From: Iphione sp. A-MEVVRFRX5
Taxonomy: Eukaryota
Length of the DNA stretch: 64,000 nucleotides
Direction: 5' to 3'
Assembly (NCBI GenBank): GCA_976226885.1
Contig: OZ320313.1
Location: 142,848,001-142,912,000 of the forward strand
How positions within the stretch are numbered: position 1 is the stretch's first letter; each line of letters starts with the position of its first letter. The notes beneath the pieces are model-generated. The model worked only from the letters and a program-made list of their open reading frames with translations. It was not told the DNA's origin and did not search any database. Positions 55,555 to 57,191 of the stretch are shown piece after piece. The translations under genes were made by a program, and so were the position numbers.

Positions 55555-57191
55555 ATGATGGCTTCAACGATGCCCTCGAATGAATCCACGGCAGAGGTGG
55601 CTTCTCAAGATCACCCCTATTCGGCAGAAAGTTTGGAGATAACTCCAGAATCGCTGAAGAGACCCAGAAGAGGTGATGATTCGCCGGACGAGAGCACTCC
55701 GAGTAAGCTCCAGATGACATGCTTGAAATCTACGGAGATTGGGGCGGCGGCGATTCCCAAGGATGACGGCTCCGAGAGCTCGCCACATGTACCAGAACCT
55801 GTGAAGACGGGCCCTTCGAAGATGGTTCCAGTGTCTGCAGTTCCTACATCGGTCGGGGTGGCTACACCGACGGTTTCCCAGGCGGTTCCAGTGAATTCAT
55901 CTCCTACACCGGTCAGGGTGGCTTCGCCGACGACTCCGAGGGCACCAACGACAACGGGAGGAGCGACAATGGGGGACCTGGCGGGGGCGGCGGCCCCGCT
56001 ATCCATGGAAGATATCTCCTCCAAAATGGCAAGTTTGCATCTGATTACAGATGATACCCGGCGTGAGATGGTAGGTTTCAAGTCTGAACTTAAAGAGGCA
56101 GCTGCCTCCGTGCATCATCTTAATGACATGACTACGTCTATGGACACTGATTTGAACACTTTGAAACATCAGTTAATGCAACAACGTGATTTGTTACAAC
56201 ATTCCATCCAACATAACCTTACCCATGAGCGTTATTCACGGTGTTTGAATCTCTGCTTTGACGGTATCCCAGAATCCATAGATGAAACGCCGGAGTCGTT
56301 AAAGCAAAATTGGTAGAATCCTTGTTCCTTAATGTACTTGGTATTAGTAATGTTGATTTAGATGTTGCACACCGCCTTGGTAAGCCCTTGGGAGGCATTG
56401 TACGATCTGTAATTGTCCGATTTAGGTCCCTCCATGAGAGAAATAAGGTGTGGTTCAAGCGGGCCTCCTTCCGCAAGTATAAAGAGGCTAATATTTGGCT
56501 ACGTGAGGATTTGCCGGATGTACTTAGGGAAAGAAAGGAGCAATTATTGAGAGTAGCTAGGGCAGCCAAACGGTCGGCTAATTATAAACAGGTACTGATC
56601 CGGGATGATGTGTTGTACCTTGATGGTATTCCTGTTGATCATACAAATTTTGATTCTCTGCCAATGGAAATCCATCCAGTTATACTGGCCACACGTACCT
56701 CAGATCTTGTTTTTGTATTTTCTGGGCCTTCTCACCCATTAACTAACGAATATCACTGTCAGATGATGATTGACTCGGAAGTGTTTTATTCGGTTATTCA
56801 ATATATTATTGTTAGTTATGCACATTCTAAAACGCTCACTTGGATTGAACGTCGGGCCAGGTCAGCTACCGATGCCCGAGTGTTGACACCTTTATTGTAT
56901 GAGATTAGAGCGTTGGATGGGGCTACGGAGGAAGAACTTGCCTTGATGCGCAATGCCCTGAACATTAAGTTTCGCACGGTTGAAGTGGCTAAGGAAGCAC
57001 TGGCTTCAACAGGGAATAAGCTCATCGGTTGGGCTTCGCGTAACAAGGTCTGGGGCATCGGAATGCCCCTTAGCCACAAAGATGCCCTCACTTCTCCAGT
57101 CTGGCCAGGACAGAACCACTTGGGCCGTCTGCTAGGACAAGTCAGGACCGAGTTGGCCACGGAGGCGGCTTCCAGCAACCCTTCAACATGA
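55555..57191 (+). CDS. ORF1p: disordered N-terminus, coiled coil, L1-type RRM/CTD, C-terminal NADAR domain (one frameshift at about 56308; about 545 aa if repaired)
   Basis: ERYSRCLNLCFDGIPE...LDVAHRLG...RSVIVRF...IWLREDLP is the L1 ORF1 RRM/CTD signature. The C-terminal FSG..HPLTNEY..MMIDS..FYSVIQY / MRNALNIKF / LASTG / WGIG / WPGQNHLGRLLGQVRTEL segments match the YbiA/NADAR pattern. Confidence 0.88.

Follow-up and report, generated by a model that had tools for sequence, protein, structure and literature searches.

Long interspersed nuclear element (LINE) ORF1 proteins are regarded as RNA chaperones with a few known add-ons, among which are an esterase (in CR1-like elements), PHD and CCHC domains. 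The NADAR fold is known from toxin–antitoxin systems and from phage counter-defence, as an eraser of DNA-base ADP-ribose. Here, we analysed a 64,000-nucleotide stretch of the Iphione sp. A-MEVVRFRX5 genome (assembly GCA_976226885.1, contig OZ320313.1, positions 142,848,001 to 142,912,000 of the forward strand; hereafter the window, in whose coordinates all positions are given), where ~55190-61192 is occupied by a dead ~6-kb copy of a bicistronic L1-superfamily LINE with a NADAR domain at the C-terminus of its ORF1. Our results make it fairly probable that the NADAR of the clade to which this element belongs, being devoid of the ADP-ribose site, is a pseudo-enzyme maintained by selection and serving retrotransposition non-catalytically.

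According to a one-paragraph remark published in 2025 within an Ectocarpus transposable element (TE) study, Tx1 LINE ORF1 proteins of Crassostrea gigas in Repbase carry a YbiA-family NADAR, for which the authors suggested RNA processing and for which the main text contains no residue analysis; the same study placed a NADAR at the N-terminus of Pol in one Gypsy lineage (PMC12477816). This was the one relevant paper on NADAR in retrotransposons returned by full-text literature searches, and retrotransposons are unmentioned in the NADAR biochemistry papers. The preliminary description of our locus had known of no ORF1–NADAR element and was out of date in this respect, since the paper mentions the oyster domain, albeit as an uncharacterised one. 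Compared by description only, the oyster proteins likewise hold a YbiA-type NADAR in a lophotrochozoan LINE ORF1, whereas catalytic degeneracy is a feature of the clade studied here and the Tx1 label applies to the oyster elements only. The esterase, PHD and CCHC ORF1 proteins and, as far as that study portrays it, the Ectocarpus Gypsy lineage have also recruited an extra fold, but they differ from our element in fold, or in element class and position. The fusion itself was already known, barely; new, as far as we found, are the inactive clade with its monophyly, the selection that maintains it and a NADAR-only half-LINE.

The forward-strand open reading frame (ORF) at 56310-57191 encodes 293 amino acids (aa), and its translation holds FSGPSHPLTN, FYSVIQY, MRNALNIKF, LASTG, WGIG and WPGQNHLGRLLGQVRTEL, so that all the ordered NADAR motifs quoted for 56709-57155 in the preliminary description were recovered. 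Pfam NADAR (PF08719) matched aa 159-282, corresponding to positions 37-162 of the 163 in the profile, with E 8.5e-13 and 49.3 bits (curated cut-off 35.1), and relatives scored 33-44 bits; NCBIfam TIGR02464, the riboflavin-type NADAR, was matched at E 9.7e-11, below its equivalog cut-off. A single-sequence search of the PDB gave a weak match (8BAU, E 0.05), and a profile of 35 copies matched the NADAR 8BAU at E 4.2e-8 and YbiA 2B3W at 7.5e-4. An AlphaFold model was built from the alignment of these 35 same-genome copies, with a mean predicted local distance difference test (pLDDT) of 86.8. Residues 126-288 of this model superposed on the Phytophthora nicotianae NADAR 8BAU with Z 19.2 (root-mean-square deviation (rmsd) 2.2 Å, 160 residues) and, with Z 16.0, on Escherichia coli YbiA 2B3W; the DarT1-associated Geobacter NADAR was a weaker match (Z 6.8), and Foldseek returned 8BAU at E 3.2e-8, with a template modelling (TM) score of 0.70 by target. 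The Pfam and profile matches together with the superposition on 8BAU and YbiA confirm the observation of a NADAR, and the C-terminus of this ORF is a true YbiA-type NADAR fold behind an L1-type RNA recognition motif (RRM) and C-terminal domain (CTD). It has in common with 8BAU and 2B3W the fold and the motifs FxG..LSN, KF, WGxG and GxNxLGxxLxxxR, and departs from them in its substituted ADP-ribose-contacting and catalytic residues and in being part of a retrotransposon protein that binds RNA.

The portion ahead of the NADAR resembles mammalian LINE-1 ORF1p. Model residues 1-125 matched the RRM-CTD of human L1 ORF1p (2LDY and 2W7A, both Z 5.8) and the mouse L1 CTD 2JRB (Z 5.1, rmsd 1.8), and Foldseek gave 2YKO a probability of 0.95; these RRM-CTD structural Z values are modest, and Pfam Transposase_22 was not matched by the ORF1 of this copy or of its relatives. 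For an intact relative, whose ORF1 is 530 aa long, the AlphaFold model shows a disordered 133-residue N-terminus followed by an 80-residue helix (137-216), predicted as an L1-type coiled-coil stalk of the trimerisation type, and then by the RRM (218-303), the CTD (307-346) and the NADAR (365-523). By predicted structure, the order of long helix, RRM and CTD is that of human and mouse LINE-1 ORF1p (2YKO, 2LDY, 2JRB), but the mammalian proteins terminate after the CTD, without NADAR, and sequence similarity to them is too low for Transposase_22. The preliminary description had the NADAR following, in frame, a complete coiled coil-RRM-CTD; this holds for the architecture of the family, whereas ORF1 of the present copy is frame-broken and complete only in relatives. 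Downstream, ORF2 matched Exo_endo_phos (1.2e-17), RVT_1 (3.3e-30) and zf-RVT (3.8e-06) of Pfam and aligned collinearly, over aa 6-753, with human L1 ORF2p 8SXT (E 2e-76), R2 proteins reaching only ~1e-18. The RRM-CTD matches and this collinearity bear out the earlier view of an L1-type LINE with an ORF1p–NADAR fusion. Because of its N-terminal apurinic/apyrimidinic endonuclease (APE) plus reverse transcriptase (RT), its collinearity with L1 ORF2p and its poly(A) 3′ end, the element belongs to the L1 superfamily (L1/Tx1).

In NADAR enzymes, the lysine at position 50 of the P. nicotianae protein (95 in E. coli C7) binds phosphate, and arginine is tolerated there in vitro; E43 is the conserved glutamate of the SxE[HQ] motif and E125 the glutamate that defines the family. 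ADP-ribose is held in P. nicotianae NADAR by E43, K50, R79, W89, R93, E125, D130 and W133, and both the de-ADP-ribosylation of guanine and toxin rescue by E. coli C7 NADAR depend on E88 and K95 (equal to E43 and K50) and on D171, the structural counterpart of E125 (PMC11543638). We took the equivalents of these residues from the alignment of the profile to 8BAU, a joint MAFFT alignment and column counts over the 35 clade copies. The E43 equivalent is I163 in this copy (numbered in the 293-aa ORF) and Leu, Ile or Thr in the clade (23, 6 and 6 copies); that of K50 is Y170, with Tyr in 21 clade copies, Phe in 4, Cys in 4 and others including His, but never Lys or Arg. W89 and R93 correspond to Ala and Glu, respectively, and both are lost in the clade. 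At the E125 position stands W241 (clade: Trp 27, Leu 6, Phe 2), and at that of D130 N245 or a gap (clade: Asn 18, Gln 7, Glu 5, His 2, Asp 2). W133 is retained as W248 in this copy and in the clade, and R79 has no secure alignment, so that six of the eight ADP-ribose-contacting residues (E43, K50, W89, R93, E125 and D130) are substituted in this copy, mostly by hydrophobic or aromatic ones. This clade also has neither the Asp two residues ahead of the E125 position that is the solution of BC4488, where Ile or Leu is found instead, nor the His at the E125 position that is the solution of phage NADAR. The NADAR of this clade is probably a catalytically degenerate pseudo-enzyme, judging from these alignments.

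Other lineages of the same genome present a different picture. A PF08719 search of the genome gave 4416 first-look candidates, among which SxE[QH]..K and LxEA[ST]xDxxWG are conserved both in 29 other ORF1–NADAR lineages (L052-L080, on many chromosomes; 94-109 bits, frames open over 500-700 aa) and in a standalone NADAR gene. The 29 lineages keep the equivalents of E43, K50 (or Arg), W89, R93 (or Lys) and E125. The standalone 212-aa ORF (L051:1360-1995:-, G000:C22:27636416-27636865) scored 175.6 bits, has all canonical site residues and is probably the host's own NADAR gene. Almost all of ~100 public ORF1-like proteins have E, K/R, E, D/N and W in the five key alignment columns, and the pattern of the inactive clade was seen in none of them. 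This clade is most closely related to the public 'E-R-E-N-W' type, whose best own-genome matches, by coordinates, are inactive-clade copies. The canonical elements (L052-L080 and the public P0018, P0022 and L083) have a homologous ORF1 and a downstream APE/RT ORF2, but retain the site residues that were lost on one long branch here. The 35 inactive sequences were recovered as a single clade in a NADAR tree (Shimodaira–Hasegawa-like approximate likelihood ratio test 99), with a stem branch measuring 1.8 substitutions per site, the alignment including the trait's own columns and both groups being sampled via similarity searches. This tree places the loss of the ADP-ribose site as a single event at the base of the clade, on the long stem branch.

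What followed on that stem was conservation. Saturation at synonymous sites is the rule in comparisons of full-length lineages, where the NADAR dN (nonsynonymous substitutions per site) is 0.04-0.23; where dS (the synonymous equivalent) is measurable, dN/dS is 0.05-0.16 for the NADAR and 0.03-0.11 for the RRM-CTD, apart from one pair (L007/L008) at 0.40. Ten columns of the 167 in the NADAR alignment are invariant and 16 near-invariant, among copies down to 35% identity. The NADAR of the inactive clade is, on these estimates, under strong purifying selection.

A derivative family in the same genome offers the best clue to a use of the inactive NADAR. At least 12 dispersed copies (L014-L025; for example L018:892-2001:+, G000:C15:35077181-35078290), with 76-93% nucleotide identity, carry an ORF of 364-370 aa. 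Its N-terminus and initial coiled-coil half are those of one full-length lineage; about 170 aa comprising the remaining coiled coil, the RRM and the CTD have been lost in frame, and a complete inactive-type NADAR follows. Nearly all of ORF2 is absent, and the last ~100 bp of ORF2 and the 3′ untranslated region (UTR) are retained. Over five non-overlapping copy pairs, the ratio of nonsynonymous to synonymous differences (pN/pS) is 0.33 for the derivative NADAR (p = 1e-6 versus neutrality) and 0.79 for the N-terminal part (p = 0.16), the two differing by Fisher's test (p = 0.002). These copies are HAL1-like non-autonomous half-LINEs. HAL1, the 'half-L1' of mammals, reportedly comprises ORF1-only non-autonomous L1 derivatives; as in HAL1, an ORF1-derived ORF is present without ORF2, and L014-L025 also keep the LINE 3′ end and are spread over many loci, but HAL1 keeps a normal ORF1p whereas L014-L025 keep the N-terminus, half of the coiled coil and the NADAR only. 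Since the RRM-CTD was discarded and the NADAR kept under selection, a role in cis that is independent of the RRM-CTD is suggested, and the inactive NADAR could be useful for mobilisation in cis.

Putting these observations together, intact ORF1p of this clade is built, by predicted structure, from an N-terminus without order, a long helix of the trimerisation type, the RRM, the CTD and a C-terminal YbiA-type NADAR, in which the residues holding and hydrolysing ADP-ribose have been replaced once on the stem and the new sequence has then been held by purifying selection. The NADAR might accordingly act non-catalytically within the ORF1p ribonucleoprotein (RNP), as a module for binding or scaffolding; its candidate partners are RNA or single-stranded DNA, ORF2p and a host factor, nucleic-acid binding or recruitment being judged the likeliest. 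A more specific version, in which an exapted pseudo-enzyme binds nucleic acid or ORF2p and acts in cis without the RRM-CTD, is tentatively put forward as one possibility; if true, it would add a mode of RNP engagement that has not been described before for LINE proteins. Several points weigh against the reading as a pseudo-enzyme under selection. Its binding partner is purely inferred, and the function of LINE NADARs is read from sequence and models. The residue equivalences depend on profile and MAFFT alignments and on a predicted model, and the middle of the domain (the region of R79, W89 and R93) is less securely aligned than the two motif regions. dS is saturated in most full-length pairs, and sampling was biased, as the 35 copies were chosen by similarity to the query and intermediate lineages may exist. 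Finally, the near-invariant clade-specific residues R190, R200, E209 and H256 could form a re-tooled site.

This last point leads to the possibility that the NADAR is still an enzyme, acting through H256, E209, R190 and R200 on a different substrate. The strength of purifying selection, the new near-invariant polar residues and the long stem branch followed by conservation, which fits neofunctionalisation, would be in keeping with it. Nevertheless, such residues are used by no known NADAR, nothing points to a substrate, and the hydrophobic and aromatic replacements at the old site suggest a filled pocket, so that a re-tooled enzyme seems doubtful.

The preliminary description had proposed that the element carries a domain that binds or erases ADP-ribose or guanine adducts, and an active ADP-ribosyl-nucleobase hydrolase or ADP-ribose reader could counter host nucleic-acid ADP-ribosylation. 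Such a role would suit a fold shared with the enzymes that reverse guanine ADP-ribosylation; giant viruses and RNA viruses also have NADAR in fusion with enzymes of nucleic acids, and sister LINE lineages have kept all key residues with high Pfam scores. For this element the proposal is not supported, as the site residues are replaced in this copy and across its clade, with no acidic residue or histidine at the E125 position or two residues before it, and mutation of E88, K95 or D171 in E. coli C7 NADAR abolishes activity or rescue (PMC11543638). The eraser or reader model is therefore clearly unlikely here on the residue evidence, but it may be a reasonable hypothesis for the canonical sister lineages.

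A functionless, decaying relic riding on an essential ORF1p would account for the lost catalytic residues and for the broken state of this particular copy. It is made very unlikely by the low NADAR dN/dS across lineages with saturated dS and by the conserved columns among divergent copies, which rule out decay, and further by the derivative that has dropped the RRM-CTD and retains the NADAR under constraint; a truncated domain was found in no sampled lineage.

How widespread the fusion is was assessed within and beyond the genome. In its own 1.18-Gb genome, searched in all six frames, the 293-aa ORF had 3682 first-look candidates, so that candidate copies number in the thousands and lie on many chromosomes; 134 of them were scored, and every one matched with E < 1e-53 at 35-85% identity, mostly in stop-free open frames of 450-610 aa. 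The scored matches cover the RRM, CTD and NADAR jointly, with 12 (L014-L025) aligning to the NADAR part alone, and the domain is plainly not confined to the copy in which it was first noticed. A hidden Markov model (HMM) of the clade's NADAR, searched against 1.84 billion cluster representatives, found 9160 proteins at E <= 1e-3, and about 100 of the best 150 matches are 300-800-aa proteins with one C-terminal NADAR behind recognisable RRM-CTD sequence. An 809-aa protein from the Logan assembly ERR14368249 is followed downstream by a 1245-aa ORF2 with APE, RT and zf-RVT. On that contig (L081), whose ORF1–NADAR LINE is of the canonical type, a 1.5-kb gap with small ORFs only lies between ORF1 and the APE/RT ORF, at 2454-4013. 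An ESM Atlas cluster shows the matching RRM-CTD-NADAR shape (TM 0.76 over 261 residues), and the nearest ESM Atlas clusters by language-model features are eukaryotic, with Annelida the commonest. A word-index protein search with the 293-aa ORF or with residues 240-530 of an intact relative returned nothing at E <= 0.001, its database seemingly being without close relatives. The ORF1–NADAR fusion is family-wide and not private to one copy, because thousands of own-genome candidates and the same architecture in unrelated assemblies were found. An accidental origin at this locus, whether by capture of a host exon in a single copy or as a frame that is open by chance, is refuted by these copies on many chromosomes, the same architecture with an APE/RT ORF2 in unrelated public assemblies and the ESM Atlas cluster of that shape.

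The NADAR can be viewed as a large, old and barely described addition to lophotrochozoan LINE ORF1, in which lineages with an intact site coexist with a successful clade that kept the fold and, by its residues, lost the chemistry, and in which a parasitic half-element relies on the inactive domain alone. This natural pair of active-looking and inactive-looking domains could be used to test action on ADP-ribosylated nucleic acid against a binding use of the fold. It also serves as a warning that 'NADAR' in a TE annotation does not equal 'ADP-ribose eraser'.

Outside TEs, the Haliotis rufescens protein XP_048255699.1 (P0001, 4240 aa) contains seven tandem NADAR repeats, the first with an inactive-type site, and further non-TE tandem NADAR proteins occur in ENA assemblies (P0002-P0005 and P0008), several with two to five repeats and nearly all without the catalytic glutamates. 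Such arrays of repeated pseudo-NADARs may be a family of their own.

The layout of the element in the window is given in the table.

Table. Features of the L1-superfamily LINE in the window, with the basis for each
Feature	Position	Strand	Content and basis
Probable 5′ UTR	55190..55554	+	5′ end approximate, within ~70 bp
ORF1, first frame	55555..56316	+	Disordered N-terminus, coiled-coil helix, start of RRM; ORF list, alignment with intact ORF1s
ORF1, second frame	56310..56672	+	Remaining RRM (to ~56500), CTD ~56511-56672; structure matches to L1 ORF1p
NADAR-fold domain	56685..57173	+	Encloses 56709-57155; probably catalytically degenerate; Pfam, fold matches, residue mapping
ORF2, first part	57303..59606	+	APE endonuclease aa 8-233, RT aa 527-745; in-frame stop 59604-59606
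ORF2, remainder	59607..61057	+	Same frame beyond the stop; zf-RVT region ~60585-60758
3′ UTR	61058..61192	+	AATAAA 61153-61158; 16-nt poly(A) 61177-61192, the end of the element

The copy is dead because its ORF1 frame is broken and a premature stop interrupts ORF2. Of ORF1, the N-terminus and the coiled coil lie in the forward ORF 55519-56316, in another frame than 56310-57191, with the coiled-coil helix at ~55990-56229 and the first RRM strand and helix from ~56230. The frame break falls at ~56305-56316, where the first frame terminates at a stop and intact relatives read straight through. The stop of ORF1 is at 57189-57191, and ORF2 starts 111 bp past it, an interval too short to hold a third (esterase) ORF. 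The last ~60 codons of ORF2 are in a different frame from ~60869 onwards, which suggests a second ORF2 break, and the peptide in the shifted frame resembles the ORF2 tail kept by the derivative family.

Regarding the boundaries, a 72%-identical full-length relative (L085) could be aligned with the window from 55411 on, and the motif TTGTCGCAAG near 55190 is common to the 5′ region of the derivative family. At the other end, homology with L085 stops at 61189 and with a 94%-identical, 5′-truncated copy (L084) at 61200. A target-site duplication was not established, as the repeat search of the flanks gave a single unconvincing 8-mer, shared between the 3′ flank and ~55192, which was rejected because it belongs to the conserved 5′ motif of the family.

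An imperfect (CT)n-rich microsatellite at 61375-61650, outside the element and ~180 bp past its poly(A), yields spurious SLSL/RERE open frames on both strands. It had suggested a Kibi-like, microsatellite-targeting Tx1 element, which was rejected given the ~180 bp between the poly(A) end and the microsatellite. Just upstream of the LINE, at 54944-55165, lies a short repeat, ~290 bp long, in which aataacgtttcaccaagaat-like units recur. It also occurs as an insertion within the LINE copy L084 (3160-3445) on another chromosome and is probably a small mobile element, either a short interspersed nuclear element (SINE) or a miniature inverted-repeat transposable element (MITE).

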